Below, one piece after another: positions 430-64,000 of a DNA stretch of 64,000 nt (its first letter is position 1; every line of letters starts with the position of its first letter). Both the position numbers and the translations under genes were made by a program. Below the pieces are notes generated by a model, which saw only the letters and a program-made list of their open reading frames with translations, ran no database searches and was not told the DNA's origin. The DNA is taken from the sequence record PQ330092.1; one strand, written 5' to 3'.

Positions 430-598
430 CATTGCTAAACTATTCAATATATATTCTACTAGAATGATGCAAACAGACTCATATAGTACTGAATTCAAAG
501 AGTTGAAAGTCCTGATGTACTTGGGAACCCAATATCAGGAACAAGTTATTTTGGAATATATTAATTCGCTGAAGAAGGATATCCGTTATGTACGATGA
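407..598 (+). CDS. small hypothetical protein, paralog of previous gene
   Basis: Tight packing; similarity to 211-429. Confidence 0.7.
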   Translation: MKIIDQNDIAKLFNIYSTRMMQTDSYSTEFKELKVLMYLGTQYQEQVILEYINSLKKDIRYVR

Positions 599-1148
599 TT
601 TAGATATTGCGTTTGAACGTATGGTAATTTTAATGCAATGTGCAGAAATGCATGAAACAATCCGTCGCACCAAAGGGATTGAATATACAAGTAAACTATT
701 CTCATACGAAAGTCGTCGAGGGATGGATCATTTTTACTGCACTGATTGTTCAAAGTTTTCAGTACTGAAATATTATCATCCTACTGTTTCCAATAATAGT
801 TTAATATCCACATATGACGGTGATCTGTTTAGTGTAATGTATGACACATTACATCCATCAATTTCAATCTATAAAGATTGCGATAGTAGTTTATCGTATA
901 TAATTGAAGATTACTTATCTCCTAATACTGAAGAGAATATTTTTCAGAACAGTGTGTTGCATGATGAATTAAGTATAAAATGCATCTATATGTTCAATAA
1001 GTTAAAAGAGTACGCCGATAATAATTACTTAATTGATAAGTTAGCAGTATTGTCTGTTTCCGTTTTTAATACAAATGACATTGATATGAAATACTATAAT
1101 GAGATTTGTAAAGTACATCATATGTATAAGGAATTACTATGTTATTAA
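588..1148 (+). CDS. FQ-box family hypothetical protein
   Basis: TEENIFQNSVLHD motif; tight gene packing. Confidence 0.75.
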   Translation: MYDDLDIAFERMVILMQCAEMHETIRRTKGIEYTSKLFSYESRRGMDHFYCTDCSKFSVLKYYHPTVSNNSLISTYDGDLFSVMYDTLHPSISIYKDCDSSLSYIIEDYLSPNTEENIFQNSVLHDELSIKCIYMFNKLKEYADNNYLIDKLAVLSVSVFNTNDIDMKYYNEICKVHHMYKELLCY

Positions 1149-1741
1149 ATGCAAATAAATGTTGTAGTGCAGATGTGCATTTGTTTTTTAAGAAATTAGT
1201 AAATGATATTATCTATATGCAAGAAATCATTTATCACAAAAGAATGGACTTAGAAAAAGCATTAGTTCAGTTCTCTTTTATGCTGGATGGGATTATTACT
1301 TTAGATGGTGATGGATTGCGTATAGCATTTGACGGTAATTCAAATAGGGTTTTCTATTGGATGAATAATAAATTATGTTCCTCAATTTGCCGCACTTTTT
1401 ATAACCCTATTTCGGACTTATATCAATTGGTGTATTCTAAAGGTGCAGTAGAAGCATCATATGGTGATAGTTATGCCCTAGGAAAGAGTATTCCATATAT
1501 GAATACATTTGATATTGAATTAGTCAGTACTGATGAAGATGCAATGTTCACAAATGATTTAACGATGGAACGTGAATCTGCAATGAGATATATTACAAAT
1601 TCTATGCATACATTCTTTCAACGAGTAGAATTTGATAATGTATATATAGCAAATGTAAATATTTTTATTGACCTGTGTCAGTACTTGAGAAGTGTTTGTG
1701 ATTTTGATGAAAGCTATTGTAAGCTTTATACTGAGGTATAA
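1139..1741 (+). CDS. hypothetical protein
   Basis: 200-aa ORF in packed cluster; FQ box not clear. Confidence 0.7.
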   Translation: MLLNANKCCSADVHLFFKKLVNDIIYMQEIIYHKRMDLEKALVQFSFMLDGIITLDGDGLRIAFDGNSNRVFYWMNNKLCSSICRTFYNPISDLYQLVYSKGAVEASYGDSYALGKSIPYMNTFDIELVSTDEDAMFTNDLTMERESAMRYITNSMHTFFQRVEFDNVYIANVNIFIDLCQYLRSVCDFDESYCKLYTEV

Positions 1742-1746
1742 AACAA

Positions 1747-2109
1747 ATGAACACATTAAGTATTACATACTATACAACTAAAAAATTAGTTACTTGTTTA
1801 ATATCATTGAAGACAAACCATGATGATATGTTTGATATGGCTGCATATGAATTAGAATTATCAGAAGATGGCTTCAAGAGCTATGAAGTATATAGCTATG
1901 TTCGTGAAGATGTAATTGACACTACACTAATGCAAGAGGATGAGTTATTCCAAGAAAGTTTAGTATGGGATAATAAGTACGATTGTAACTTTGATTTCTT
2001 ATGTTTAATCCAGAAAGAAATGAAAAGAATCTTTGATAATTATCCAGTGAAGAGATTGAGTACTGGACCGGAGCAGTACAGGAGAATTTTATTCCGTTAT
2101 GAAGACTGA
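1747..2109 (+). CDS. FQ-box family hypothetical protein
   Basis: QEDELFQESLVWD. Confidence 0.75.
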   Translation: MNTLSITYYTTKKLVTCLISLKTNHDDMFDMAAYELELSEDGFKSYEVYSYVREDVIDTTLMQEDELFQESLVWDNKYDCNFDFLCLIQKEMKRIFDNYPVKRLSTGPEQYRRILFRYED

Positions 2110-2434
2110 ATTAGTGAAAGTAATGTACGCTACTCATATTAAACTACTACTTGTGAAATTTGATTATAATAAAAAACATAATGATTTCTATACTTTAATT
2201 CGTGATGAAAATACATTCTCCTTGCGATGCAACAATATACCGTTGAAGATAAATGATTTTACTTCACTTGACGAGGGTGAATTATTTCAAGAATCATTAG
2301 TTTTTAATAGTAATATAAAAATTGATATAGAAGTTATTAAAAAATACCAGATTTTATTGAACAAAATTATGAATTGTTATCCATGTGAAATAGGTGGTCA
2401 TATGCAGTTCAAATCAAAAATGTATGAATTATGA
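2099..2434 (+). CDS. FQ-box family hypothetical protein
   Basis: DEGELFQESLVFN; close paralog of 1747-2109. Confidence 0.75.
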   Translation: MKTELVKVMYATHIKLLLVKFDYNKKHNDFYTLIRDENTFSLRCNNIPLKINDFTSLDEGELFQESLVFNSNIKIDIEVIKKYQILLNKIMNCYPCEIGGHMQFKSKMYEL

Positions 2435-2978
2435 GGTTTATATGTTAGATAAAAAAATGAACTCTGGAACCCAATATAATCATCTTAAGTTGGATACATT
2501 CGAATCAGCTATCAGTACAGCACAAGATATAATTGATATTATCAAGTTCATTAAAGAAGATAAGTTCAAATGTTTGAAAATACTAAATCGTTCAATGTAC
2601 CGTGATAAAAATATTCATGTATCAGTACGTAGACCGAAAGATCAAGAAAGTGGGAGAGATTTCTATAACAACAGTGAGCAGTTCGAATGTGAATATGATC
2701 CAGAATTCAGAGGCGGTTTCATGTGTTACAGTATAAAGGATACCTCACACATTGAGATACGTTCATCGAAAGGTGGCATACGTACATTAGAGTTCATTGA
2801 TATAGTTTTAAATCAGGAATACTACTTTCAACTATCATTATTGTTTCCTGCATACGATTTAGGAGTTCTATTCATGTATAAGTACTTTCATGAGCACTGG
2901 AATGAAGACTTCTATCTGGACTTAGAAGATTACCAATTAGTTTGGAAAGAAATGGTAGAACTTCGCAACCCATCTTGA
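2424..2978 (+). CDS. FQ-box family hypothetical protein
   Basis: NQEYYFQLSLLFP; start moved to internal ATG (uncertain). Confidence 0.75.
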   Translation: MNYEVYMLDKKMNSGTQYNHLKLDTFESAISTAQDIIDIIKFIKEDKFKCLKILNRSMYRDKNIHVSVRRPKDQESGRDFYNNSEQFECEYDPEFRGGFMCYSIKDTSHIEIRSSKGGIRTLEFIDIVLNQEYYFQLSLLFPAYDLGVLFMYKYFHEHWNEDFYLDLEDYQLVWKEMVELRNPS

Positions 2979-3004
2979 CACCCTCCGATTCTTTGTGATA
3001 TAAT
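2975..3004 (+). promoter_or_regulatory. sigma70-type early promoter
   Basis: TTGACA 2975-2980 and extended -10 TGaTATAAT 2996-3004. Confidence 0.8.
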
Positions 3005-3037
3005 CTCTTTATATTAATTGTAAAGGGTTATATCACA

Positions 3038-3514
3038 ATGTCCAAAGACCTATCATTTAGCAATGCACAAAAAATAGCAAAAGACATTATCAGGGTTTAT
3101 AAATTCCTTGCGAATGTTACTGAAGATTTTTCCGTGGGGGAACATAAAGTTATTAAACGAAATGGATACCTTTCATTTATGGATGGGTTACTCTATAGTT
3201 CAGATGAATCAACTTGTAGCATTAGAGTTCTTGATGAAGTACCAAGTGGTGATTTTATTTCATACCATTTTCCAAGTTCAGATAATTTCAAATACTACAA
3301 TCATCTTCTTATAAATGAAGCATTTAATACGATTGTAATTAACACTGAAGAAGAGTTCTTCCAGTACAGTACTGTGTATCCAGAGAGGATTGTTTTCAGT
3401 TCAGTGATTTTAACAGCCCTTAAAAATGAACTAAATTCCGATAGTGATCATTTCTACTTGGACCTGAACAATGTCGATTGTATTATTGAGTACATGGAGA
3501 AAAATGGTTTATGA
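3038..3514 (+). CDS. FQ-box family hypothetical protein
   Basis: TEEEFFQYSTVYP. Confidence 0.75.
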   Translation: MSKDLSFSNAQKIAKDIIRVYKFLANVTEDFSVGEHKVIKRNGYLSFMDGLLYSSDESTCSIRVLDEVPSGDFISYHFPSSDNFKYYNHLLINEAFNTIVINTEEEFFQYSTVYPERIVFSSVILTALKNELNSDSDHFYLDLNNVDCIIEYMEKNGL

Positions 3515-4005
3515 TTACTACAGAATATGATTACTATGGTGTTTTAGAATTTACAGAAAATATCTATCGCATTGCAAAGGAGTTCAGAAGTCCTAAGCCT
3601 TTTGGTGGTATGTTTCAATACGATGAGTTCAGTTCATCTAAAGGAAGACTAGCATTTACTAATGTTAGAGGTAATCAAATCTACGCGGAGTACTTTGATG
3701 ATAATGACTTTCATTACAAAACCGAATACATTTCATATTGCCCTGGGTCTGATTTGAAGATTAATATTGATACCTTTAGAGATTCAGTGCTTGTCCCTTA
3801 TAGTGAGTTAGTTTTCATGACAGAAGAAATGTACTTTCAAGAGTCTTGTATTCATGATGTAAAAGTACTTAATGCTATGTTATTTTATGGTGCACTACTT
3901 CATCATTACAAATACAAACAACGATTCTTTTTAGATTTAGTAGTATACTATAAATGCGTGGATTATTTGAATGCAAAATACGACAACAATTCAGTACATG
4001 ACTGA
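3511..4005 (+). CDS. FQ-box family hypothetical protein
   Basis: TEEMYFQESCIHD; ATGA overlap. Confidence 0.75.
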   Translation: MITTEYDYYGVLEFTENIYRIAKEFRSPKPFGGMFQYDEFSSSKGRLAFTNVRGNQIYAEYFDDNDFHYKTEYISYCPGSDLKINIDTFRDSVLVPYSELVFMTEEMYFQESCIHDVKVLNAMLFYGALLHHYKYKQRFFLDLVVYYKCVDYLNAKYDNNSVHD

Positions 4006-4333
4006 TGGTACTGAATACTTTGTTTCAAGATATGTAATCAACCACAACCATTATGTAACCTATATTCCAGAGTACAATCAATTTTATATCCAGATTTATC
4101 AAAATAATGGAAAGATAAATGATATATATTCAGAAATAAAAATCCCTGATTATAGTACTTTATCAGAAGAGGAATTGTTTCAGGAGAGCACTATCAGTAC
4201 TGAAGATGTGTACGAAATAATGGAATACCAAAAGGTACTTAAACATTTTCATGAAGCAAATGATATACAAATAGATATTGTTAAACCGTGGTGTTACAAT
4301 ACATATGAGGTAAATTATGTTAGAAATGATTAA
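3971..4333 (+). CDS. FQ-box family hypothetical protein
   Basis: SEEELFQESTIST; true start possibly 3998. Confidence 0.75.
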   Translation: MQNTTTIQYMTDGTEYFVSRYVINHNHYVTYIPEYNQFYIQIYQNNGKINDIYSEIKIPDYSTLSEEELFQESTISTEDVYEIMEYQKVLKHFHEANDIQIDIVKPWCYNTYEVNYVRND

Positions 4334-4730
4334 AATTATGCAACGCTGTCTTGTTGATCAACACGGGGTATATGGATATCGTTTAAGTGCTCCTATTGAC
4401 AAAAATAAAACAACCTATGTAAGCTATAATGCTGTACATGGATTTGATATATTCATTGATGCCAACAATAAAATCAAACAAGCTAAGGATGTGTCTATAA
4501 TGACCCCTGATGAGTTATTCCAGTACAGCTTAGTTCTTCCTACATGTATCGATTTACAACGTCTAGGAGCGATACAGAAGGTTTTACGCGAACATAAAGT
4601 ACAACCCAATAAAGTCACACACATTCCAGAAACAATCTTCAAAACCATAGAAGTAGAAACTCCTGATTATATGTTAAGTGATGATGAGTACTACGAGAAA
4701 CACTTCCCTGGTAAAGTTTGGAGAGACTAA
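4317..4730 (+). CDS. FQ-box family hypothetical protein
   Basis: TPDELFQYSLVLP. Confidence 0.75.
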   Translation: MLEMIKIMQRCLVDQHGVYGYRLSAPIDKNKTTYVSYNAVHGFDIFIDANNKIKQAKDVSIMTPDELFQYSLVLPTCIDLQRLGAIQKVLREHKVQPNKVTHIPETIFKTIEVETPDYMLSDDEYYEKHFPGKVWRD

Positions 4731-5221
4731 TGAACCGAAAGTACAGAGAAACTATGAAGTTCGCTAAGGAGTGTTTAGAAGTGTTTGAGTTCATCAATGC
4801 TCATAAAGATTTACTCCATAGATACATTGCAATCAGTGAGACAGATGACCATAGGTACATATGTTCTCGAATTCAAGATAAGATATATAAGATTGTGTTC
4901 TCGGAAACATACACAGATACATCTAATTCACTATATGATTTTGCACGTACTGATTACGTTTCATACAAATCTTGGTCTGATAGTATTAAAATTGTGCACA
5001 AGCAAAATACATTTTATTCTTTTCTTACGGACATTTCCGAAGAAAGTTACTTTCAAAACAGTTTAATTTATACAGAAAAAGAACTCAAAATGTTATTCAT
5101 AATGTCGTACTTTAAAAAGTACTGCAAATTTAATACATTATCTTTTGAGATTTCTGCAATGAAAGTATTCATTAAAAATGTAAAAGAATTAAAGAGGGCT
5201 TTTAATGTACATAGAAAATGA
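4718..5221 (+). CDS. FQ-box family hypothetical protein
   Basis: SEESYFQNSLIYT. Confidence 0.75.
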   Translation: MERLMNRKYRETMKFAKECLEVFEFINAHKDLLHRYIAISETDDHRYICSRIQDKIYKIVFSETYTDTSNSLYDFARTDYVSYKSWSDSIKIVHKQNTFYSFLTDISEESYFQNSLIYTEKELKMLFIMSYFKKYCKFNTLSFEISAMKVFIKNVKELKRAFNVHRK

Positions 5222-5747
5222 GAATGTAAAATGCATTACTGACATTTGTATAAAATTAATGAAAATTTTCATTAACCCAAAATACAAGACTCGTTCTTTA
5301 CGTCATAATATTGATGAGCATTGTACCATTAATATACTAGGTAGTATTCTTGATGTAAAATATGATGGTAAAATGTTATTCGGTATAAGAGAAGAGAAGA
5401 TAGATGATGCATTCTTTTCTTCTAAAGATAAATTTGAACCTTCTGATTATAAAGTGATTATTCGTGATGATAGCATCTATATTAGTAGTGATTATTCAAA
5501 TTACTTCGATAAAATATACACTGAAAACGTTGACTACCATTATGAAATGATTGATTTACCAGTAACAGACATTGATATGGAGAGAATCAAATTTTCATTA
5601 TCAGATAATGAGTACTTAGGTATACAAACATATTATTCACTACAAGGAAAGATTCCACCTGCTATGTATATAAGGATTGAGATTGGTAATGTATTCAATG
5701 ATAAGGTTATATCAATTGCTGATAAAATATTGGGGGTTGAATTATGA
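5205..5747 (+). CDS. hypothetical protein (degenerate FQ box?)
   Basis: SDNEYLGIQTYY at equivalent position. Confidence 0.7.
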   Translation: MYIENENVKCITDICIKLMKIFINPKYKTRSLRHNIDEHCTINILGSILDVKYDGKMLFGIREEKIDDAFFSSKDKFEPSDYKVIIRDDSIYISSDYSNYFDKIYTENVDYHYEMIDLPVTDIDMERIKFSLSDNEYLGIQTYYSLQGKIPPAMYIRIEIGNVFNDKVISIADKILGVEL

Positions 5748-6307
5748 ATATCAATGATTACCAATTTCATAGGCTTGAATTTCGTCATTGTGTTGCATTT
5801 GCAAAAACATTGATGTGCATCATTGACACTCTTTCATCCAAACAATTTCGTAAGGATAATGATTTATTTCTGAAAAAAGGTCGTGTGACATCATCCGATA
5901 TCTGTGTTGAACTATTTGTTGATATCAGTGTTGATACCGGAGACAGTACAAGGGTTGGTTGTATAGGTCATATTGGTACACATTGCTTCACATGGAATCC
6001 AAATACAAGTCAAGTACGAATTGATTATAGAAATTCACGTTGGGTTGATCTTAGTACTGAATCCGATTTAGAATCAGCTATGTTCCAGCTAAGTTTAATT
6101 CACAATCCTAATGAACTTCTTTACATTATTACTTTCAGTTATCTGTTACAAAACTACGATAAACCATCAGGGTTTTTCATAGAATCGGATATAGAAGAAA
6201 TTATGGAAGAGTTTCCTAGTTTAAAGGATATTCTGGTAGAAAAAGATTTCTATGAAGACTTCAGAGATTTATACGACATGCACTTGGAGTTATTTAAGAA
6301 TGGATAA
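5744..6307 (+). CDS. FQ-box family hypothetical protein
   Basis: LESAMFQLSLIHN. Confidence 0.75.
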   Translation: MNINDYQFHRLEFRHCVAFAKTLMCIIDTLSSKQFRKDNDLFLKKGRVTSSDICVELFVDISVDTGDSTRVGCIGHIGTHCFTWNPNTSQVRIDYRNSRWVDLSTESDLESAMFQLSLIHNPNELLYIITFSYLLQNYDKPSGFFIESDIEEIMEEFPSLKDILVEKDFYEDFRDLYDMHLELFKNG

Positions 6308-6818
6308 AGATGATATTCTAATTAGACTAATCAACAGTCTGTTAAATTTCGTGAATAGTGCCAGTGATACACACAATATAGGTGACATTGAATTCAAATC
6401 ATTTGGAATGTACGGTGAGGAAAAAACATATTATGCATCAATGAAATTCCAAGATTATTATGAAATGTTAGTTTCATTATCATACGAAGATGTGGACCCA
6501 AGATGGAGTTCCAGTATTTCACTATCGAGAATGGTAATTCGTAGTAAACATCGTTACATTTCGTCAAAGAATACTCCCAACTTGTTTGATATTGTTTTAA
6601 ATGAAAATACCAATCCTATATCTAAACATGATATCGTACCTTTAACTGATGAAGTACTTTTTCAATTGAGTACCATTTGTGATGAAGATGTGATATCATG
6701 TATGAAAATTTATGAGAAGGTTGGGAGTGATATTCCCATGAACTATTACCTAACGATAGATGGAACATACCTCAGAGATGAAGCTCTAGCGTACATTGAC
6801 AGTGTTTTACCAAAATAA
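6300..6818 (+). CDS. FQ-box family hypothetical protein
   Basis: TDEVLFQLSTICD; internal ATG chosen to minimise overlap. Confidence 0.75.
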   Translation: MDKDDILIRLINSLLNFVNSASDTHNIGDIEFKSFGMYGEEKTYYASMKFQDYYEMLVSLSYEDVDPRWSSSISLSRMVIRSKHRYISSKNTPNLFDIVLNENTNPISKHDIVPLTDEVLFQLSTICDEDVISCMKIYEKVGSDIPMNYYLTIDGTYLRDEALAYIDSVLPK

Positions 6819-6840
6819 AGACCCGTATTGGGTCTTTTTG
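6818..6840 (+). terminator. intrinsic terminator
   Basis: AAGACCC-gtatt-GGGTCTT plus T tract. Confidence 0.8.
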
Positions 6841-6850
6841 TGTTTACGTC

Positions 6851-6879
6851 TTTACAGTAGCATTCAGATGTGTTATAAT
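6851..6879 (+). promoter_or_regulatory. sigma70-type early promoter
   Basis: TTTACA-17 bp-TATAAT with TG extension. Confidence 0.75.
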
Positions 6880-6906
6880 CGCTTTTAATAGAGTACAGGA
6901 GAAGAT

Positions 6907-7473
6907 ATGAGTACTGAATTAATTAAAGAAGTTACCTTACTTCTGAAGCATTGTTTTAAGTTCATTCCTGATACTGGTTCACGCCAGTACATTAAAGTTA
7001 ATGAGAAATATAACATCAATATCCTTGTATCTGAAACTGCGAGCAGTTATGCTAACATTGAGTTGGATTCTGAAGAAAAATATACAGTATTACAAATCAT
7101 AGCAGATGTACAACGTAAACAAGATTATCGTTCTTCATTTTACAACGATTATCTGTGTGTTTGCTCAAACTTCAGTGAGAATAAAATTGTGTATAAGAAT
7201 TTATACACACATGAAGTGATTGATACATATAATTATAAAATTTCATCTGATGAATACAATGTGCTAATGTTCAACGCAAACCTTTTGTATGATGCCAGTA
7301 CTGTACGCTGTTTAGAGTTAGCATATAAAATTCCAAAGATCATGGAAAGAAAAGATTTGATTCACTTTAAAACTATTTTAAAATACAGTACAAAAGAATT
7401 AGAGGATTTAGTACAGGCTCTTAAGAATTTCATTAATGAACATGTACCTGTTAAATTCGAGGATGCACAATGA
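6907..7473 (+). CDS. hypothetical protein (degenerate FQ box?)
   Basis: AGGAG RBS; SDEYNVLMFNANLL. Confidence 0.7.
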   Translation: MSTELIKEVTLLLKHCFKFIPDTGSRQYIKVNEKYNINILVSETASSYANIELDSEEKYTVLQIIADVQRKQDYRSSFYNDYLCVCSNFSENKIVYKNLYTHEVIDTYNYKISSDEYNVLMFNANLLYDASTVRCLELAYKIPKIMERKDLIHFKTILKYSTKELEDLVQALKNFINEHVPVKFEDAQ

Positions 7474-8054
7474 ACCATATCAGAACTAAAATTTTGAGAC
7501 TCATGCATGACATTGCAGAACTTTCAGAGATTCATGACATTACAGAAATTGTTGAATTTGATGATTATCGACTGAAAATTGAAAACAAATCCAAACATCG
7601 TTTTGGATCAGTTCAGTTGGATGTATATAAAACTTATGAATTTTCTAAAAAAATTAAAAGTTCATGGGATACGATTACTATGTACATTCGCACATCCAGA
7701 AATCGTGAACGTATTGGTTCTATTTCTTCTAATATGGTATTTGCGAATGCATTACATGAAAAAATGAATAAAATTGTAGAATCTGATTTCAGTGAAGATG
7801 ATGGTTTTATTGGGTTGGATGTTCCACCAGAATTAGACCAAAGTGAAGATATTCGAGATGCATTCATTTTCCAGAAATCATTGTTGGACAATTACAAAGA
7901 ATTCGAGTACTTAATGCTTTGTTACGATACTGCAAAAGTTCTTGATTGTGGTGAACTAGTTATGTACAATGATTTTATCAATTACAAGACTGATGTTCTG
8001 AATACACTACTTCAAAATATAGAATCGGTTAAGGAAAAATATGAACGCTTATAG
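7470..8054 (+). CDS. FQ-box family hypothetical protein
   Basis: RDAFIFQKSLLDN. Confidence 0.75.
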   Translation: MNHIRTKILRLMHDIAELSEIHDITEIVEFDDYRLKIENKSKHRFGSVQLDVYKTYEFSKKIKSSWDTITMYIRTSRNRERIGSISSNMVFANALHEKMNKIVESDFSEDDGFIGLDVPPELDQSEDIRDAFIFQKSLLDNYKEFEYLMLCYDTAKVLDCGELVMYNDFINYKTDVLNTLLQNIESVKEKYERL

Positions 8055-8619
8055 TTATATGACAGAACGCCATCAGTTATTATATGATATCAGTACAAAA
8101 ATGTTATCAATTGTTAGTAGTGCAAAAGAAATTGAAAAACAATACCTCATCCGTGATGTAGCAATTTCATCTAAATGTTGGTCCAATGAATATTACGATC
8201 ACGGTATTCTTACTATTTCTGGGGCTAGAAATATTTGTATTGTAAAAAATAAAAATAAAAGTAATGAAGAGTGTGAGATTATAACCGATATACAAATTAA
8301 GGATGATGGAAGTTTTTCACACCACCCATTCCATATTAGTACTATTGGTGTTTTATATAATATTAAAGTACTATTCGGTGATGAAGAGTATGTGTTAAAA
8401 TCTATCAATCCAGAATCAAGTACAGTTGAAGAAGAACTGTTCCAGATGAGCACTGTTATACCTGAAGAGGTTCTTAGTACTGTTATTTTTTGTAGTTTAA
8501 TTTATCATGAATACAAAAAGTACCAGTTCGATTTCCACATGTTAGGAACATACATCTTCAATAATTTGAATGTAGATCGTTTAACAGCATTAAATGCAGC
8601 AATGGATAAGGTGCTATAA
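8041..8619 (+). CDS. FQ-box family hypothetical protein
   Basis: VEEELFQMSTVIP. Confidence 0.75.
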   Translation: MNAYSYMTERHQLLYDISTKMLSIVSSAKEIEKQYLIRDVAISSKCWSNEYYDHGILTISGARNICIVKNKNKSNEECEIITDIQIKDDGSFSHHPFHISTIGVLYNIKVLFGDEEYVLKSINPESSTVEEELFQMSTVIPEEVLSTVIFCSLIYHEYKKYQFDFHMLGTYIFNNLNVDRLTALNAAMDKVL

Positions 8620-9047
8620 TGACAAGAGATGATTGTTTGTACATATGGGATATAATTGAAACTACACTTTCAAATCCAGAAAATTATAAAACAAAAAAAA
8701 GACAACGACACAAAATATGGATAGATTTGTTCGTTGAGGGCATACACGCAGTGACTATTTGGGATTCACCGAGGGCATCATCATCTACTCTGTTGGACAA
8801 TGAATGCATTGATTGCATTAATTCCACTTTTCATCTCTACGGTACTACAATTTTTGGTACATTTCTGGATATTGAAAGTAAAGATGATATTGATTCACTT
8901 GCGTTACAATACCAAGTACTATATAATACTAAATTAATTTACGATTTAGTACTAGCTTCTTATGTGTATAAATTAATGATGAAATATAATCATATTTCTG
9001 TTTCAGTTTATACTAAGGATATTCTTTCATTAAGAGACAAAACATGA
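8619..9047 (+). CDS. hypothetical protein (degenerate FQ box?)
   Basis: IDSLALQYQVLYN; TAATG overlap. Confidence 0.7.
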   Translation: MTRDDCLYIWDIIETTLSNPENYKTKKRQRHKIWIDLFVEGIHAVTIWDSPRASSSTLLDNECIDCINSTFHLYGTTIFGTFLDIESKDDIDSLALQYQVLYNTKLIYDLVLASYVYKLMMKYNHISVSVYTKDILSLRDKT

Positions 9048-9553
9048 GTTTATTAAATGCACGCGAATTGGTTGAGATGTATGAGATTTTGTCTTCATAT
9101 AAAAATTCTCCAAAAGATGTAATTCTAAACAAAAAGTTCCATGTCAGTGTTGAACATATAACAAATATAGATATGATTTCTTTGGTGGAAAGTAATAAGT
9201 CAGGTCTGGAGCGTGATATCATGCGTTTGATTTATATTCCTAAACCATCATATACTAATGATAGTACTATTAGCAATGAGACATTCATGTATAGTCCTGG
9301 TACGGATTCTACTATAGTATCGCTGTCCAATAAATCAATGGATACTTTCCAATTCATCTATACCAGTACTGATAACATTGAAGAAATTGAATTTCAAAAC
9401 AATACATTAAGTCCATGTAGTAGTGTTATAACCTTTATGTCATATCTATGGTCAACTAAAACAAGTGCTGTTGTATATAGTTCAAATTATACACAAGATA
9501 GTATTGTTGAATCATATAAAGTTCTAAAGGAATACTATGAAAATAACAAATGA
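9044..9553 (+). CDS. FQ-box family hypothetical protein
   Basis: IEEIEFQNNTLSP. Confidence 0.7.
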   Translation: MSLLNARELVEMYEILSSYKNSPKDVILNKKFHVSVEHITNIDMISLVESNKSGLERDIMRLIYIPKPSYTNDSTISNETFMYSPGTDSTIVSLSNKSMDTFQFIYTSTDNIEEIEFQNNTLSPCSSVITFMSYLWSTKTSAVVYSSNYTQDSIVESYKVLKEYYENNK

Positions 9554-10118
9554 TTTTATTAAAAGTGTAGTACACCCTATGCTTAGTATTATGAAAAAAA
9601 TACAGAATCTACCGGAAGATAACGATTACAAGTTTAATCGTTTTGATTCAGATGTGTTTTGTATTGAAATTGAAATTAATAACAATCGCAATTTACATTT
9701 AAAATTCAAAGAATCTTCGAGTCCGTACTACAACTTTGATATGAATTTTAAAATAGATACTGACATTGAAGAAAACATAATATCAAATCATACTAGCAAA
9801 AATGGTTTTATGCATAGAACTACTATGTACAATAATAAAAATAGTATTATATCTAAATGGAATCAACAATTCACTAAAATTTGTGAAATTGAATATAATG
9901 ATTTTGGTGAAGAACATTACTTTCAGTTAAGTACAATTCATGAACTTCCACCATATGATTATGTTAAAACATGGTTTGATATTCATAATATAATTGATGA
10001 TGCAATCAAACTTCCATTTGGTGTGTCAATATCATATACTGCTCCTAAAACATTTGTTTTTACTGAAGATATGATTATGAAAAAGATATGGGCAATTATC
10101 CCACTTATGATGGATTAA
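9537..10118 (+). CDS. FQ-box family hypothetical protein
   Basis: GEEHYFQLSTIHE. Confidence 0.75.
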   Translation: MKITNDFIKSVVHPMLSIMKKIQNLPEDNDYKFNRFDSDVFCIEIEINNNRNLHLKFKESSSPYYNFDMNFKIDTDIEENIISNHTSKNGFMHRTTMYNNKNSIISKWNQQFTKICEIEYNDFGEEHYFQLSTIHELPPYDYVKTWFDIHNIIDDAIKLPFGVSISYTAPKTFVFTEDMIMKKIWAIIPLMMD

Positions 10119-10123
10119 ATTCG

Positions 10124-10161
10124 TACCAGGGGTTGACTCTGGTATTTTTGTATGATACATT
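10124..10161 (+). promoter_or_regulatory. terminator hairpin with embedded sigma70 promoter
   Basis: TACCAG/CTGGTA stem plus T5; TTGACT (10133-10138) in loop, 17 bp to TACATT. Confidence 0.6.
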
Positions 10162-10179
10162 GTCCTAAAGGAGAATTTT

Positions 10180-10731
10180 ATGAACTACAATCATGATCTT
10201 TTTACATTATGTGCATCCAAATGTGTTGATGGATGGACAGATAAAATCAATACCATAATTCATCGATATCTGGTCTTTAGTTCTCGTGCACGAAGTGAGG
10301 GGGCTATGGATTTCAAATATACACTATCTATTGATGGTGTAACTATCCATGCAGACGAAGAACGTCTGAGCATTAATTTGTATGATTCCTGTGTATTTGC
10401 TATTCACCAAAAGATGGGGAAAGGATGGGGTTGTAATAACATTAACTCAAAAGCTATCTTTTGGGTTGGTCACCACCAGACAGTACTTGATCCTTCAATC
10501 AAATCTAATCTTTTATCCGATAATATGGTTTATGATTTATTGTACTCCGAAGAACAACATTTTCAGTTAAGTACATTACATGATCTGGCACAGTACGAGG
10601 ATTGTTACAAAACATTAGAACTATGCCATTCCCTTGAACTTAAAGATAAATTGATACAAGTTTACCCTTCATTCTTTCATGAAGAAGTACAAAGTACACT
10701 AGATCATATTTTATATGGATACGATAAATGA
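10180..10731 (+). CDS. FQ-box family hypothetical protein
   Basis: AAGGAG RBS; SEEQHFQLSTLHD. Confidence 0.8.
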   Translation: MNYNHDLFTLCASKCVDGWTDKINTIIHRYLVFSSRARSEGAMDFKYTLSIDGVTIHADEERLSINLYDSCVFAIHQKMGKGWGCNNINSKAIFWVGHHQTVLDPSIKSNLLSDNMVYDLLYSEEQHFQLSTLHDLAQYEDCYKTLELCHSLELKDKLIQVYPSFFHEEVQSTLDHILYGYDK

Positions 10732-11330
10732 GAAAAAGTTATCAAGAAGCTATTGACTTAATTCGTGAAGTTATCAAGGTGGCTCCTGCTGCTATTGAGT
10801 TCAAGAAGTCCATATACAAGAAGTATGGGTCAATGTCGAGTATGTGCTTTCAAAAGAAACGTAGAGCATTCACTACCCAGTACTGGAATGATTCTATCAT
10901 CCTGAGTAATGAGACTCAGCGTATTTTAACACTAGAATCTGAACCTAATGAGTACGGGGAAGGGAACATTTGTGTACCTGATTATGATGAAATTAACTTC
11001 AACTGCGGTGATTTTGAAACAACATTATTACTTCATGAGGGTTATCCAGAAGGTGATGTATTAGCTGAGTACAATCCAAAAACTAAAATTCTCAAAAGAG
11101 GAATCCAGTTCACTATTAATAACAAAGATGATGTTCAAGCAGCACTGATGCAACTGAGTACAAGTGAACCTATCACTATTAGTGTAGAAGAGTTATGGGG
11201 AATTATTTCAGTACTCAATGAGTGCTACAAAGTAAAATCATTGCGTAAACACAGCATTATATTACATACCAATATGGCAAATATAAAATGTAAGCACATT
11301 CAAGAAATGGTGGTTCCAGATGGACTTTAA
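10728..11330 (+). CDS. FQ-box family hypothetical protein (variant)
   Basis: VQAALMQLSTSEP. Confidence 0.7.
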   Translation: MRKSYQEAIDLIREVIKVAPAAIEFKKSIYKKYGSMSSMCFQKKRRAFTTQYWNDSIILSNETQRILTLESEPNEYGEGNICVPDYDEINFNCGDFETTLLLHEGYPEGDVLAEYNPKTKILKRGIQFTINNKDDVQAALMQLSTSEPITISVEELWGIISVLNECYKVKSLRKHSIILHTNMANIKCKHIQEMVVPDGL

Positions 11331-11904
11331 AGAAATTGAAAGTAAATTAAAGTACTTCAAAGATATCAAACTTCTTTGGAAAAAGTATAAAGTTGATTAC
11401 AATTTCAGTGATGATGAGACAATAAAATACATTGAGATTAATATCAAAATCAAGTTCAAGAATAATAATTATGGTGAAGTAACCTTAAATCATACTGGTA
11501 TATCACTCAAGGACTATGATGGTACAACACTCGCATATTTTGACTTCACACCAGAACCAGGTGAAACACTACTTAGTGAGATAAATTCCTATGACATGGA
11601 AGTGTTCGGCGGGAATCCGTTACTGTTCCGACTTTCTGAAGAGTGGAGTGAAGAGTACTACACTTACAAAGATGGTGTAGTACTTGACATTCATGGAGAA
11701 GTTGTGAATGACTTGGAAGAACGTTTGTTCCAAGAATTGTGTGTTTCAAATACTTCATATGCATACAATCATATCCTTGACATGTTTGATTTATATAGTA
11801 AAATAGATGCTGAAATGAAGGCACATGGTATTCATTACCTTACAATTAACGACTATGCTCAACTCGAAACCGCTGTGAAAGCATTGACTAAAGTACTGAA
11901 ATAG
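11320..11904 (+). CDS. FQ-box family hypothetical protein
   Basis: LEERLFQELCVSN. Confidence 0.75.
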   Translation: MDFKEIESKLKYFKDIKLLWKKYKVDYNFSDDETIKYIEINIKIKFKNNNYGEVTLNHTGISLKDYDGTTLAYFDFTPEPGETLLSEINSYDMEVFGGNPLLFRLSEEWSEEYYTYKDGVVLDIHGEVVNDLEERLFQELCVSNTSYAYNHILDMFDLYSKIDAEMKAHGIHYLTINDYAQLETAVKALTKVLK

Positions 11905-11913
11905 GAATGAAAT

Positions 11914-12327
11914 ATGAAACTGTATCATGCGAGTACTGTAAAAATTGATAACTTTTATATCCCGTATGGTGGTCTTCATATGGGAGGTAAACACAGTGCT
12001 TTGGAAGCTGCATTACGCAAGCTGAGAAGCCCACTGAACGTAGTAGACGCATGTACAGTATACTTGCATACCTTAGAAGTTGATGTTGATAACGTGCTTC
12101 TGTGTGAAGATTTAGGCAGTGATGATGAGTGGCGTTCACTTATTGAGAATTGCACTGCTCAAGGTTATGATGCTGTTCAGTACAAAAATGATTACGAGCC
12201 AGACAATGTTCCTAGCTTTATGATTTGGGATGCATCTAAAGTTCGCATCATTGAAGTTGATGCTATGCATATGGATGAAGCTGAAATGATTATCGAAGAT
12301 TTTCTTGATGAATATGAAGGTGTATAA
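11914..12327 (+). CDS. putative ADP-ribosyltransferase-fold protein (ART-PolyVal-like)
   Basis: N-terminal KLYHAS, GLHMG..A and C-terminal GYDAVQYKNDYE..SFMIWD pattern typical of ART folds. Confidence 0.55.
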   Translation: MKLYHASTVKIDNFYIPYGGLHMGGKHSALEAALRKLRSPLNVVDACTVYLHTLEVDVDNVLLCEDLGSDDEWRSLIENCTAQGYDAVQYKNDYEPDNVPSFMIWDASKVRIIEVDAMHMDEAEMIIEDFLDEYEGV

Positions 12328-12863
12328 TGACTGACCCGATGGTAGCACTGGCACGTACTAAGTTACTATTAAAGATTGGTGAGATTTTTACGGTTCTTCT
12401 GTCCAATAATATTGATATTACTGAGCTAGATATTAAGCAACCGTGGGAAGTGACTATGTTCTCGGCGTTCCACCGATTGTCATATAAAGGTGAAAGTGTT
12501 CTTGATTTTAACCCTAAAGCAAAATTCATAGATTATGCTGCGTTGTACAGAGAGTTGCACCGAAATATTTATTCCGGTTGTATAACCAATAACTTCAAAG
12601 AAATTAAAGTTCAAACTGCATCACATGAGTTCAATGATTTACTTTATCCAGAATTTAATCTAACGGAAGAATTACTCTTTCAGTACTCGTTAATTCTCAC
12701 AAATCTCGAAACGCTAGAGTACTACAAAGAGTTAGTAGATATTTTTATGAATACACGACTTTCAAAAGATATTGTGATATTCTGGTATACAGAGCATGTT
12801 ACGGAGGAATTGCTTACTGAATTTCTTCTAAATATGACAGCTATAAAGGAGAAGTTATGTTAG
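12327..12863 (+). CDS. FQ-box family hypothetical protein
   Basis: TEELLFQYSLILT. Confidence 0.75.
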   Translation: MTDPMVALARTKLLLKIGEIFTVLLSNNIDITELDIKQPWEVTMFSAFHRLSYKGESVLDFNPKAKFIDYAALYRELHRNIYSGCITNNFKEIKVQTASHEFNDLLYPEFNLTEELLFQYSLILTNLETLEYYKELVDIFMNTRLSKDIVIFWYTEHVTEELLTEFLLNMTAIKEKLC

Positions 12864-13330
12864 ATATTTTAGGAAACATCGATACTGCAAATTATTTTAT
12901 CCAGGACGCACTGTTCAATACAGTTCAACAAGGATTAGAAGTTCGTCATAACGTTTACCAAGGTGATGGTTATTTCGTTGATATTGTTGAGGCACGAAAG
13001 AATACGTTTAATGTTAACATTACAACACTGGGTAGACAGAACATTGCACGAATTTTAGTAAGTAAAGATGAAATTGTATTGAGATACAGTGCTAAGTTTA
13101 TGTTGACTTATAAGAAAAAAACTGATATGTTCAGTACTAATTTATTTGATGAGCCATTTGACCTTGAAGATATTGAAGCTACTTTCTTTACTCAAAGTAC
13201 TATGGTAAAATACACTGATGTTCAATTTTCTGCTGATGTAATGTCGGAAACATTACAAATGATCAAGGTATTATTTTATGCATTTGAGCAATTTAGAGAA
13301 GAAAGAAACAAGGTTAACAACCACAGATGA
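12857..13330 (+). CDS. FQ-box family hypothetical protein (variant)
   Basis: IEATFFTQSTMVK. Confidence 0.7.
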   Translation: MLDILGNIDTANYFIQDALFNTVQQGLEVRHNVYQGDGYFVDIVEARKNTFNVNITTLGRQNIARILVSKDEIVLRYSAKFMLTYKKKTDMFSTNLFDEPFDLEDIEATFFTQSTMVKYTDVQFSADVMSETLQMIKVLFYAFEQFREERNKVNNHR

Positions 13331-13691
13331 ACTAATAGAGGCGATCACTAAGGAGTCAAAATATCACAAAGGGATTCGTCTATATTTTATAGATATTGGT
13401 TCAATGGAAGGCATATACATTTATGGTTCACAATCTTTATCTTATGATGTAATGCCAAAAAAACATGTAAAAATCTTTTTAGGTTCAGATAAAAAAACTT
13501 TCTTGACAATTAATGATAAAAACGTTATTATGAATTCGTTGGGTCATGATAAGGTGGAAATTGATCTAAACACACTGGAGGATATTGATTTTTTTCAATA
13601 CGAGTGTTTAGGTGTTGACTTACATGGCATTAGTAGCGATATGATAAAATCATTAATCAAATATTTCGAAGGTGTTCATAAATGTATCTAA
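13278..13691 (+). CDS. FQ-box family hypothetical protein
   Basis: EDIDFFQYECLGV; start uncertain. Confidence 0.7.
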   Translation: MHLSNLEKKETRLTTTDELIEAITKESKYHKGIRLYFIDIGSMEGIYIYGSQSLSYDVMPKKHVKIFLGSDKKTFLTINDKNVIMNSLGHDKVEIDLNTLEDIDFFQYECLGVDLHGISSDMIKSLIKYFEGVHKCI

Positions 13692-14179
13692 CTAAATCAA
13701 TGAAAAATTCATTTGATAAAATCAAGAGTTGTCTTGATGGGGAAAATATTACAAGTGTTACACAAACTGCTGACCAAATTCAAAGCAGTTCAAGTGATTG
13801 TACTGTTATTTTAGGTTTACATAGTCTACGTTTATCAATAGTAAATAATATTGACAACACTGCTATTGTAATCACACCATGCCATATTCAAAATGAGAAT
13901 GGTGTATATCTTCATCACATGGGAACAGTATTTCATATTTTCAATACAAACGAAAACATTGTTAAGGAATACAAATCTCTTAATATTGATTCAGGTGAAT
14001 TATTTCAAATGAGTACTTTGTACTCATGTAATTTTACAGATACTTCATGTATTTTGCCATTTTTCTTGGAAATTATTAAGAAAATGGAAAATTTAAAACG
14101 TGAATACAATAAAGAAATGGTTCCTGAAGCTATATTAAATATTACTAATGCTATAGAGAAGTATAATGCAGTGACTTAA
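13682..14179 (+). CDS. FQ-box family hypothetical protein
   Basis: DSGELFQMSTLYS. Confidence 0.75.
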   Translation: MYLTKSMKNSFDKIKSCLDGENITSVTQTADQIQSSSSDCTVILGLHSLRLSIVNNIDNTAIVITPCHIQNENGVYLHHMGTVFHIFNTNENIVKEYKSLNIDSGELFQMSTLYSCNFTDTSCILPFFLEIIKKMENLKREYNKEMVPEAILNITNAIEKYNAVT

Positions 14180-14221
14180 TAAAAACGCACATGGAGTGCA
14201 TTAGAAGATCAAGGATAGATC

Positions 14222-14695
14222 ATGGAGATTAAAACTGTTGAAAATGGGAAAATTGATGACATTTTAGAGTTGGACGCATTCAAAGTTCATGATATAATGT
14301 TTAATGTGAAGGACATTATTCAATGTCTATTTTTGTGTAGCAAGACAATGCATGATTTTTTTCACAACCCAAATACTAACGTTTTTATACTAACAATCAG
14401 TACTGAAAACTCGTTTATCATGGGTATGCCTATGAGTACAAATGAACAATATATTGATTGTGTTATTCGTAATAACGATAGTATTACGCCACAATCTGAA
14501 GTACGTAAAAAGAAAAACACCTACACAATCAAAGATGATAAAATTATGATGTGCTGTAGTAAAGGGTTTATATTAGATAATTTTATCGTAAAAGACAGTT
14601 ATCACGACTTTAAAGTATCTGAAAATCAATCCAATGTAGTTCTTTATGCGAGTGACATAGAAAGTCTAACAGTTAAAGATCCTAGTTTGGAGTAA
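14222..14695 (+). CDS. hypothetical protein
   Basis: 157-aa ORF with AAGGA RBS. Confidence 0.7.
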   Translation: MEIKTVENGKIDDILELDAFKVHDIMFNVKDIIQCLFLCSKTMHDFFHNPNTNVFILTISTENSFIMGMPMSTNEQYIDCVIRNNDSITPQSEVRKKKNTYTIKDDKIMMCCSKGFILDNFIVKDSYHDFKVSENQSNVVLYASDIESLTVKDPSLE

Positions 14696-14697
14696 TT

Positions 14698-14829
14698 ATG
14701 TCGAAGAAAGTTAACAATTTCGTACAGAAACATATGAATGAGTTTAATAAACCTCAGACACATGTGGATCGTAAAAAAGAAATGAAAAATGGTAAAGTAA
14801 AACACAAGTCGAGATTTATTCTCGACTAA
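14698..14829 (+). CDS. small basic protein (43 aa, not in ORF track)
   Basis: GGAG RBS; MSKKVNNFVQKHMNEFNKPQTHVDRKKEMKNGKVKHKSRFILD. Confidence 0.7.
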   Translation: MSKKVNNFVQKHMNEFNKPQTHVDRKKEMKNGKVKHKSRFILD

Positions 14830-14852
14830 TTTTTTGTCTAAATTTATGAGGA

Positions 14853-15710: not shown

Positions 15711-15726
15711 TTATGGAGGATTTGGT

Positions 15727-16020
15727 ATGGATACTAAATTCAAAATTATTTTTAAAACTAAGCCGTATATTCCACATACAGCAGAACGTTTTATACCACA
15801 TGGTGCTGAGGAAATTATTCACCAAGATGGTACTAAGTTATACCTTGTTCCTTGTTCTTATGAACGTGCAGTAGAAATGTTACTAATGAATGCTAGACTA
15901 TGCAAAAACAAGTACATTAGTTACCTATACAATGAACATATTTTAGATTTCAATGATGAAAATATGTTCATTCTAGCAATTGAGGATTTTGATAACTGGT
16001 ACAATATTATTAAAATCTAA
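15727..16020 (+). CDS. hypothetical protein
   Basis: GGAGG RBS; NDENMFILA box-like segment. Confidence 0.7.
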   Translation: MDTKFKIIFKTKPYIPHTAERFIPHGAEEIIHQDGTKLYLVPCSYERAVEMLLMNARLCKNKYISYLYNEHILDFNDENMFILAIEDFDNWYNIIKI

Positions 16021-18310: not shown

Positions 18311-18422
18311 TAATTAAAAGAAAATAGTACTTGTAGAATTAGACATGCGTAGCATGGTAATTCTACTGATGTTGATGGAATCAACGTCACGTATATTCAT
18401 TGATGTTTCCATAGGAATAATG

Positions 18423-42934: not shown

Positions 42935-42996
42935 CTGTTATAAACTGTACACCTTAAGTTTTATTTTTAAAAATTTGAGTTAAGTACAGAAAAAGT

Positions 42997-43025: not shown

Positions 43026-43060
43026 TTATATCTTCCTAAACAAAATTGAGGACTTGTTAT

Positions 43061-43669: not shown

Positions 43670-43739
43670 AAATAATTAAAATAACAGGATGATTATGATG
43701 TACTTCCTTTGTTATTAATTATATTGAGATTATATAACT

Positions 43740-44590: not shown

Positions 44591-44617
44591 AAGTACTAAT
44601 ATTATAAGAGAGAATAG

Positions 44618-51242: not shown

Positions 51243-51275
51243 TATCAGTACTGTCATAATGGCAGTACTTTTTAA

Positions 51276-62640: not shown

Positions 62641-62644
62641 ATTT

Positions 62645-62685
62645 AAAGCTCGTCTATTGACGGGCTTTTCTTTTATGTGTATAAT
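62645..62685 (+). promoter_or_regulatory. terminator hairpin overlapping sigma70 promoter
   Basis: AAAGCTCGTC / GACGGGCTTT stem plus T tract; TTGACG 62657-62662, 17 bp, TATAAT 62680-62685. Confidence 0.7.
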
Positions 62686-62707
62686 TGAATAAAAATAGGA
62701 GGAAATT

Positions 62708-63274
62708 ATGGTCAAAACTTTATTACCACCACCAAAACGTCACAAAATCAAAGAAATGAAAGAACAACGTACATTAAAGATGTACAACAATTTAGTTAAG
62801 TTACTGTGTAAAAGTCCATCGCTCAAAGCAGAGTTTAAAACTGATGATGACCGTAAAGCACTAATTGAGATGAAATATATGCTCAGTAAAATGTCCTTTT
62901 ACAAATTTGTAAAAGAATACGCATCTGACCCATTTAGTCCTCGTTGGAGAGCCAAACCAAGAGAGTATTTTTACGGTGGTTCATATACAGATCGCATTCA
63001 AGACACAGTGATGGGAGTTGAATTTGAAATCGATTATGAGCCGAATGGTGAGGAAATCTTGCAGATTGAGAAACGTTTACCAAGTGAAGAAGAAATTTAT
63101 GTTTATGCAAGAAAACTTTCAACTTACAGTTCAAGAATTACTCTAGGCAATTTAGATTCATTAATTATTTTCTATACACGTGTTGGTGTAGATAAGATGG
63201 TAACTAAACTCAATGAACTTTCATTACAACAAAAACAGATTAATGCATACAAAGACATTACTGATTTATACTAA
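62708..63274 (+). CDS. hypothetical protein, tandem paralog family
   Basis: GGAGG RBS; TDDDRKALIEMKYMLSK. Confidence 0.75.
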   Translation: MVKTLLPPPKRHKIKEMKEQRTLKMYNNLVKLLCKSPSLKAEFKTDDDRKALIEMKYMLSKMSFYKFVKEYASDPFSPRWRAKPREYFYGGSYTDRIQDTVMGVEFEIDYEPNGEEILQIEKRLPSEEEIYVYARKLSTYSSRITLGNLDSLIIFYTRVGVDKMVTKLNELSLQQKQINAYKDITDLY

Positions 63275-63280
63275 TGAGGA

Positions 63281-63802
63281 ATGGATATGTTTTTTGGATC
63301 AGTTGGAAAACAAAACAGTACTTTAATTTGGCATGAAATTATCTTTAAAATTATATCTAAAAGCTACTCACTAAAGGATATTATCACCACAGATAATGAT
63401 AGACGTATCCTGTTAGATGCAAAATATAAATTGAGCAAACACCCTTTACTTTCTTTAATCATTGATTACGTTAATGATTATGAATCTAGTCGTTGGAAGT
63501 GGGAAGACGGCGGTTTATTTCGTGGAAAAACATTCTACGGTGCGGAACGATATGTTTTCAGTGATGCATCAAATGGCGTTAAGTTTGTTATTAGAAACTT
63601 TAACTCCAAAGAAAATGATTATCTTGAAAGTGGAGTGAAAGTATATATCGATAATAATAGCAATGTCCTAACATATGACGAATCACTAATTATGTTACAA
63701 ATAATGCGTGGTGTTGAAGGTGTAAGAAACAACCTTACTAAATTGAAAATCCAGCAAAATGATATACATAATAGACAGAAAATTAAGGGTTTATATAAAT
63801 GA
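63281..63802 (+). CDS. hypothetical protein, tandem paralog family
   Basis: TDNDRRILLDAKYKLSK. Confidence 0.75.
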   Translation: MDMFFGSVGKQNSTLIWHEIIFKIISKSYSLKDIITTDNDRRILLDAKYKLSKHPLLSLIIDYVNDYESSRWKWEDGGLFRGKTFYGAERYVFSDASNGVKFVIRNFNSKENDYLESGVKVYIDNNSNVLTYDESLIMLQIMRGVEGVRNNLTKLKIQQNDIHNRQKIKGLYK

Positions 63803-64000
63803 TTTCATTTTTCAAAAAGAAACAAAAAGTTGATGAAACAGGATTAGAATCGTTTCTATGGACTCTTATCATCAAAAAAAGTCCATTGATAAAAGAATAT
63901 GCTATCAATGATGCTAATAGAAAAACTATTATTGAATACAAATACGAATTATCAAAATGTGATCCAATCGTTTATCACTTTGCGAAGTACTGTTCAAAAA
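63799..64000 (+). CDS. hypothetical protein, tandem paralog family, 3'-truncated
   Basis: ATGA overlap; NDANRKTIIEYKYELSK. Confidence 0.7.
   Translation, partial: MISFFKKKQKVDETGLESFLWTLIIKKSPLIKEYAINDANRKTIIEYKYELSKCDPIVYHFAKYCSK

Follow-up and report, generated by a model that had tools for sequence, protein, structure and literature searches.

The palindrome AGTACT is highly iterated in the genomes of Rak2-like jumbo phages

The AGTACT array in a 64-kb window of phage JP4

The window analysed here is a stretch of 64,000 nucleotides (PQ330092.1) from Escherichia phage JP4, a Rak2-like jumbo myovirus of the genus Asteriusvirus. It corresponds to positions 183611–247610 of the JP4 record, which it matches letter for letter and with the same offset on both sides of a masked zone; the runs of N therefore keep length and their flanks are collinear. 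A further run of N was found at 44375–44556, and the region 39891–44689 was left out of the comparisons. Nine sites lie in unmasked letters there and the 664 N could hide about two more, but no conclusion depends on them. The window has 116 annotated genes and a G + C content of 33.0%, rather than the roughly 31% given in an earlier note on the sequence. No Rfam family was found in it.

The palindrome AGTACT occurs 188 times between positions 485 and 63991, the first copy starting at 485 and the last at 63986, with a mean spacing of 340 bp and a largest gap of 1,274 bp. There are 50 copies in the first 17.5 kb, close to the 48 or so counted by hand in the earlier note, which took about 6 to be expected. 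The observation made in that note, a strong over-representation of AGTACT along the whole stretch, is confirmed. The number expected from base composition is 21, and a dinucleotide shuffle gives 17.3 ± 4.4 with a maximum of 30. Inside the annotated genes, 172 copies are observed against 22.4 when codon order is shuffled and 43.2 ± 5.9 when synonymous codons are shuffled. The note had named as its refuting condition a ratio near 1 under a shuffle preserving codons and dinucleotides; a shuffle keeping protein sequence, codon usage and dinucleotide counts gives 52.3 ± 6.2 with a maximum of 63, and all three frames are 3–4-fold over expectation. A compositional artefact is thus rejected by four null models.

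The frames given in the note for the copies at 485 (Ser-Thr), 761 (Val-Leu) and 1680 (Gln-Tyr) fit the annotated frames. Within genes, 171 copies are found in all three frames (84, 37 and 50), and 8 more lie in spacers or at gene edges. The motif also distorts dipeptide use. The site at 485–490 is read as AGT ACT (Ser-Thr), and this codon pair makes up 85 of 140 Ser-Thr dipeptides where 20.5 are expected; Ser-Thr and Val-Leu dipeptides are themselves over-used 1.7- and 1.5-fold, respectively. The motif prefers C before it (83 of 188 in the window) and G after it (84 of 188), and the full octamer CAGTACTG occurs 44 times, for example at 760–767, where it is read as xxA GTA CTx (Val-Leu). In the genome of phage 121Q the octamer is 44-fold over expectation. 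The flank preference is symmetric and independent on each side, with C at 44% before and G at 47% after and no information further out, which fits two identical half-site contacts. G is the least frequent base before the site and C the least frequent after it.

Among the genes of the window, that at 18982–19503 (+ strand) encodes a predicted Dam-like phage N6-adenine DNA methyltransferase of 173 residues (TIGR01712, E = 1.6e-26; phrog_111). Orthologues are found in RaK2 (63%), GAP32 (42%) and Yen9-04 (45%), and none in PA5oct; it is the only methyltransferase tested that is present in all four genera examined and absent from PA5oct, a distribution matching that of the motif. Family searches with fourteen proteins of the window and five conserved early proteins otherwise returned only families of unknown function, apart from a cytidylyltransferase-like neighbour.

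Distribution, selection and spacing of the sites

AGTACT is 8–12-fold enriched in every Rak2-like genus tested, with 903–1,011 copies per genome in four genera; in 121Q (348 kb) there are 903 against about 100 expected. It is not enriched in the distant relative PA5oct, which has 15 copies, or in five unrelated phages that infect enterobacteria (T4, T5, rV5, Goslar and Deimos-Minion), which have 15–54. Escherichia coli K-12 has 400 copies in 4.64 Mb, one per 11.6 kb. The enrichment runs against the treatment of other restriction-type palindromes in these phages, since 24 of the 64 hexamer palindromes are absent from the 121Q genome.

The sites are under purifying selection and are conserved about twice as well as control hexamers. 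Between JP4 and 121Q, 92.2% of sites are unchanged compared with 82.1% of all hexamers, with 14 sites private to JP4 and 12 to 121Q. Sites arise and vanish by single substitutions, and there is no excess of C-to-T decay at the site, so it is not 5-methylcytosine. Across nine genomes, 60 of 99 site columns are private to one genome, yet the density is kept. The sites are also more evenly spaced than chance, the index of dispersion being 0.57–0.90 in 121Q, RaK2 and GAP32 compared with 0.80–1.33 for control words. Of the nine pairs of one-mismatch neighbours, eight are at 1.2–2.2-fold and only AGGACT/AGTCCT falls below 1, at 0.59, so that no neighbouring word is strongly depleted.

We found no mention of the motif in full-text literature searches or in the papers describing JP4, phAPEC6, CBB, PA5oct, RaK2, Sharanji and fEgEco12; the one occurrence of "ScaI" in the RaK2 paper refers to a culture medium.

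Promoter-associated sites and the one-stranded variant AGTACA

About a tenth of the sites occupy fixed places in sigma70-type early promoters in three genera. Sites start exactly 7 and 27–28 bases before TATAAT in 121Q, RaK2 and GAP32, with 9–18 cases each against about 1 expected and on one strand only, although these fixed positions could partly reflect duplication of promoter cassettes within each genome. In 121Q, 18 sites lie at −7 and 18 at −27, 39 of 76 promoter-like sequences carry a site, and 84 of 159 sites in the early zone are intergenic. No such arrangement holds for the roughly 90% of sites that lie inside genes, where there is no flank information beyond one base. The terminal repeat that carries the early promoters is 2–3 times denser in sites. 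Within the window, two sites 17 bp apart (51247–51269, + strand) lie in the spacer upstream of the gene starting at 51288, and the first abuts a CATAAT −10-like hexamer, an arrangement resembling that of the early promoters. At 8915–8927 (+ strand), AGTACT is followed after one base by TATAAT, the −7 arrangement, but here inside a gene.

Next to the terminal repeat, an 8-kb block replaces AGTACT by AGTACA on one strand, with the same outer flanks. It has 41–48 AGTACA on the top strand, an 8-fold enrichment, and zero GTACT, whilst the 4–5-kb block before it has 0–1 AGTAC on the top strand and 6–11 on the bottom. This is conserved in three Asteriusviruses at 77–95% identity, and all genes there share one orientation. 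The 8-kb block matches only Asteriusvirus genomes and is free of AGTACT in all three examined, which argues against a recent foreign origin; no such blocks occur in RaK2 or GAP32. The AGTACA block ends about 4.6 kb upstream of the window and its tail extends into positions 1–16000, where AGTAC not followed by T occurs 39 times on the top strand and 15 times on the bottom. In the whole window AGTACA occurs 65 times and TGTACT 30 times. In the bulk genome the one-stranded forms are balanced and only 1.5–1.8-fold enriched, compared with 9-fold for the palindrome. A signal at the RNA or codon level is rejected, as the flanks are symmetric, all frames and spacers carry sites, and the two polar blocks have opposite motif polarity although their genes share one orientation.

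Possible readers of the signal

The interpretation offered in the earlier note is partly supported. Its core inference, a selected cis-signal at the DNA level running against the usual avoidance of palindromes by phages, is borne out by the null models, the selection on sites, their even spread and their retention across genera. Of the functions it listed, the data do not choose between a site for a phage DNA-binding or condensing protein and a mark for modification or self/non-self discrimination, a sink for a host protein is disfavoured, and a recombination hotspot has no support. The link to promoters, the clade distribution and the one-stranded block were missed in the note.

We consider AGTACT, with its optimum CAGTACTG, to be a selected signal in double-stranded DNA, specific to the Rak2-like jumbo phages and read by a factor that these phages encode, either a dimeric binding protein or the Dam-like methyltransferase. 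Our analysis establishes the enrichment, its symmetry, the selection, the even spacing, the clade specificity and the promoter placement; that the reader is a binding protein, that it is encoded by the phage, what binding achieves, and any methylation of the motif are inferred. We tentatively favour a homodimeric DNA-binding protein that would bind each site. About 1,000 evenly spread sites would then give the phage chromosome a protein mark about 30 times denser than on host DNA, and the copies placed against the −35 and −10 elements would let the same protein control early transcription. No such protein was found, however. A conserved basic early protein family (121Q 137914–138207 and 149998–150393) gave a model with a pLDDT of 74.8 but no known fold match; the best Foldseek E-value was 0.04 and an exhaustive structural aligner reached Z of at most 3.6, with weak look-alikes among the DNA-binding lobes of homing endonucleases, far below significance, and a homodimer prediction gave no verdict and is evidence neither way. 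About 1,000 tight roadblocks inside genes would also have to be tolerated by replication and transcription, and the AGTACA block is awkward for a simple symmetric dimer.

A methyl mark would explain most of the same data, although we think it the less likely account. In this view the Dam-like enzyme, as candidate writer, or another phage enzyme would methylate AGTACT, and the array would serve as GATC does in E. coli or as proposed for cyanobacterial HIP1, in strand or self discrimination, in the timing of early promoters on incoming versus newly made DNA, or in protection from ScaI-type enzymes. AGTACT is a type II restriction site (ScaI), and as the phage otherwise purges such sites, keeping 900–1,000 copies implies that they are safe. 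The even spacing and a density of one per 350 bp recall GATC, and the promoter-embedded sites fit methylation-sensitive promoters such as those of IS10 and Mu mom. However, characterised members of this enzyme family methylate GATC, methylation alone gives no reason for enrichment, and AGTACA would not be a substrate of a hexamer-specific enzyme. A polar signal read on one strand by a tracking enzyme, like Chi, KOPS or a primase site, is unlikely. The palindrome would then simply be the cheapest way to have the signal on both strands, with only one direction wanted next to the terminal repeat. The skew of the two blocks and its extension into the window would agree with this, but the weak bulk enrichment of the one-stranded forms and the lack of such blocks in RaK2 and GAP32 do not, and AGTACA keeps the G after it, which a purely one-strand CAGTAC reader does not explain.

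Still less likely is a neutral by-product of biased mutation or repair, for example a very-short-patch-like repair converting near-matches into AGTACT, as has been proposed for HIP1. The origin of sites by single substitutions and their presence in all frames and spacers would allow it. Against it, the near-matches lack the expected depletion, counts are under-dispersed rather than Poisson, sites are conserved better than controls, and two blocks of 5 and 8 kb stay free of the site through more than 20% divergence, where we estimate that the gain rate elsewhere (about 13 per 59 kb per 3.9% divergence) would have produced many. A decoy for a host protein of Enterobacterales, to which all hosts of the clade belong, is very unlikely. 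The site of the nucleoid-occlusion factor SlmA, GTGAGTACTCAC, contains AGTACT, but it occurs 0 times in 121Q and GTNAGTACTNAC twice; the looser pattern GT.AG..CT.AC has 4 matches in 348 kb, 2 of them with the AGTACT core. G before AGTACT and C after it are the least frequent flanking bases, and unrelated phages of the same hosts lack the enrichment.

A more speculative and, on present evidence, doubtful possibility is that Rak2-like phages write self-identity into their base sequence, the array being read by a clade-specific protein or methyl system that would tell phage from host DNA by the 30-fold density contrast. This would stand in for the base hypermodification of T4 or the protein nucleus of phiKZ-like phages. 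The same sites would gate the early promoters on the first-entering terminal repeat, and AGTACA next to that repeat would steer a directional DNA transaction such as injection, origin firing or repeat duplication.

Large phages usually protect their DNA by modified bases, by site avoidance or by a protein shell. This clade uses extreme site avoidance yet invests in about 1,000 copies of one restriction-type palindrome, even at the cost of amino-acid choice, implying a genome-wide DNA transaction that has not been described. Identification of the reader could give a new sequence-specific DNA-binding or methylation system, explain early-gene control in a poorly understood group of therapeutic-candidate phages, and offer a tractable model for highly iterated palindromes, whose function in cyanobacteria is still open. 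The motif is a one-line classifier for the clade in metagenomes, and ScaI should cut these genomes into about 370-bp pieces unless the sites are modified.

Among the closest parallels is HIP1, GCGATCGC, of cyanobacteria (PMC6604393, PMC6105098), likewise a short palindrome far above expectation at roughly one per 0.3–1 kb, present in genes in all frames and in spacers, kept across a clade whilst single sites turn over, of unsettled function and with a suspected link to methyltransferases. AGTACT is an analogue and not a member, being a different, A + T-rich word of six to eight bases in a virus rather than a cell, which coexists with extreme avoidance of other palindromes, is built into early promoters and has a one-stranded variant block. 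GATC, with Dam, MutH and SeqA, is a palindrome of similar density serving as a methyl mark both genome-wide and inside some promoters, and a Dam-like enzyme travels with the motif here, but GATC is near its chance frequency in E. coli whereas AGTACT is 9–12-fold enriched. The genome-coating proteins SPO1 TF1 and phi29 p6 are abundant, prefer the DNA of their own phage, bind along the genome and act on early promoters, matching the dense array and the promoter placement; TF1, however, selects hydroxymethyluracil DNA and p6 reads bendability, not a sequence word, and no homologue was identified in this phage. The word is identical to ScaI/Eco255I-type restriction sites, which phages normally lose, and no cognate endonuclease gene was identified. 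Chi, KOPS and the uptake sequences (DUS/USS) are also over-represented, evenly spread words kept by weak selection on number rather than on place, but they are asymmetric and strand-skewed, whereas AGTACT is a palindrome and only the AGTACA block near the terminal repeat is polar.

AGTACT in the JP4 window and its anatomy

The window is identical to positions 183611-247610 of Escherichia phage JP4 (PQ330092.1), an Asteriusvirus and one of the Rak2-like jumbo myoviruses of 350-370 kb. The nearest whole genome available for comparison was that of phage 121Q (348,532 bp), which was analysed in full. The offset between the window and the JP4 record is the same on both sides of the N runs, so these are masks that keep length rather than breaks. 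One of them, at window 44375-44556, was missing from the earlier note, and the region 39891-44689 was left out of all comparisons.

The over-representation of AGTACT described in the earlier note is confirmed. The hexamer occurs 188 times in the window, against 17.3 ± 4.4 in dinucleotide shuffles and 21 from base composition. Inside the 116 annotated genes there are 172 copies, whereas shuffling codon order gives 22 and shuffling synonymous codons gives 43. A shuffle that keeps the protein, the codon usage and every dinucleotide count gives 52.3 ± 6.2, with all three frames 3-4-fold above it; this null is conservative, since the motif itself inflates the usage of AGT, ACT, GTA and TAC. A ratio near 1 under a shuffle of this kind, set beforehand as the condition that would refute the observation, was therefore not found. 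The motif even shapes proteins, in that Ser-Thr is 1.7-fold and Val-Leu 1.5-fold over-used, and AGT-ACT encodes 85 of 140 Ser-Thr pairs against 20.5 expected.

In 121Q there are 903 copies against about 100 expected. The only extra information lies one base out on each side, with C before (44%) and G after (47%), and the two sides are independent. The octamer CAGTACTG is 44-fold over expectation, the signature of a symmetric reader of double-stranded DNA. Eight of the nine one-mismatch neighbour pairs are mildly enriched, as decay products would be; the exception, AGGACT/AGTCCT, stands at 0.59. The density of sites is the same in short and long genes and along the length of genes.

Distribution and selection

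Orthologous 22-kb pieces of JNE01, Munch, A4, Hallingskeid, pEa_SNUABM_12, CBB, GAP32, fHe-Yen9-04 and RaK2 all show 8-12-fold enrichment. Over whole records, AGTACT was counted 937 times in RaK2, 1,011 times in GAP32 and 1,008 times in fHe-Yen9-04, but only 15 times in the distant relative PA5oct. The counts were 29 in T4, 23 in T5, 16 in rV5, 15 in Goslar and 54 in Deimos-Minion, and 400 in the 4.64 Mb of E. coli K-12. The trait belongs to the phage clade and not to the hosts, and gives a 30-fold density contrast with host DNA.

The same genomes avoid other palindromes to an extreme degree. Of the 64 hexamer palindromes, 27 are absent from the window and 24 from 121Q (for example CCATGG, 0 against 47 expected), and GCGC, also absent from 121Q, occurs 0 times against 178 expected. 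The DNA of fEgEco12 is cut by ten ordinary enzymes exactly as predicted in silico (PMC13070987), and the DNA is therefore not globally hypermodified. In 121Q the E. coli Chi octamer GCTGGTGG is found 18 times forward and 11 times reverse, against 1.5 and 1.0 expected, although part of this may be due to codon effects.

JP4 and 121Q differ at 3.9% of positions. Of the AGTACT sites 92.2% are unchanged, against 82.1% of all hexamers and 80.9% of hexamers of the same composition, and the private sites are balanced (14 against 12) and all differ by point changes. Six of the 14 JP4-only sites read AGTTCT in 121Q and AGTTCA is 4.4-fold enriched in the site-free blocks of 121Q described below; this may be a second tolerated variant of the word. 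In three orthologous genes across nine genomes, 60 of 99 site columns are private to one genome, yet each genome keeps 12-23 sites where we estimate about 2 by chance, and conservation is twice that of phase-matched hexamers. Counts are under-dispersed in the bulk of three genera, with an index of dispersion of 0.57-0.90 against 0.80-1.33 for control words, and in the window the coefficient of variation of the spacing is 0.77 against 0.99. It is therefore number and coverage that are selected, not particular places.

Early promoters and a one-stranded variant

The densest zone in 121Q (133-155.5 kb, up to 8 sites per kb) is an array of tiny genes behind sigma70-like promoters, and half of its sites are intergenic. 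Sites start exactly 7 and 27 bases before TATAAT, with 18 cases each against 1.15 expected, on one strand only, and the same two positions recur in RaK2 and GAP32. Many promoters of the early zone read AAAAGTACTTGCAA, then about ten bases, then AGTACT, one base and TATAAT. This zone is the direct terminal repeat. The JP4 record holds it twice in tandem with a period of 20,114 bp (positions 1-2906 and 20115-23020 of L040, a stretch of the JP4 record), so that its 370,741 bp overstates the unique genome; PhageTerm gave repeats of 20.7-21.0 kb in Sharanji and fEgEco12.

An unexpected variant lies directly after the repeat, at 155.5-169.4 kb in 121Q and at L040:22884-38962 (JP4 162.9-179.0 kb), just upstream of the window. 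A block of 4-5 kb with no AGTACT, 0-1 AGTAC on the top strand and 6-11 TGTACT (AGTAC on the bottom strand) is followed by a 2-kb island with 16 AGTACT, and then by an 8-kb block with no AGTACT and no GTACT at all but 41-48 AGTACA on the top strand, which lie in all three frames and carry the usual C and G flanks. This layout is conserved in 121Q, JP4 and Ecwhy_1, whereas RaK2 and GAP32 lack such blocks. All genes in both blocks point the same way, so the flip is not tied to transcription. The top-strand excess of AGTACA runs into the first 16 kb of the window.

Candidate mechanisms

The interpretation offered in the earlier note, a selected cis-signal with several alternative functions, is supported in part: its core, a selected cis-signal at the DNA level, is supported. 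A uniform mutational or repair drive is unlikely, since no neighbour is strongly depleted, the spacing is under-dispersed and the site-free blocks persist. A sink for a host factor, one of the functions that the note had proposed, is also unlikely, because unrelated phages that infect enterobacteria are not enriched and the SlmA site is absent. Two readings remain close. The one that we tentatively rank first, because of the symmetric half-site flanks and the operator-like promoter positions, is a phage-encoded dimeric binding protein. The other is a methyl mark: the Dam-like methyltransferase in the window (18982-19503) is the only one of three tested that is present in all four genera and absent from PA5oct. 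The enrichment, its symmetry, the selection on it, its even spacing, its clade specificity and its placement in promoters are shown by the sequence comparisons, whereas binding by such a protein, or methylation of the motif by this enzyme, is inferred.

No reader was found. A 480-bp stretch at window 17833-18313 (length approximate) lacks a convincing gene, lies after a terminator and matches no Rfam family; it has three more copies at 70-73% identity elsewhere in 121Q (near 90.3, 247.5 and 326.7 kb). Of 136 genes shared by the four genera but not PA5oct, five lie in the terminal repeat. Among them is a paralogous pair of basic early proteins of 97 and 131 aa (phrog_8127), at 17914-18207 of L009 and 9998-10393 of L010, two pieces of the 121Q genome. 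The pair gave a moderate structural model whose predicted fold had no significant structural match. Each of the two sits behind a promoter with two AGTACT sites.
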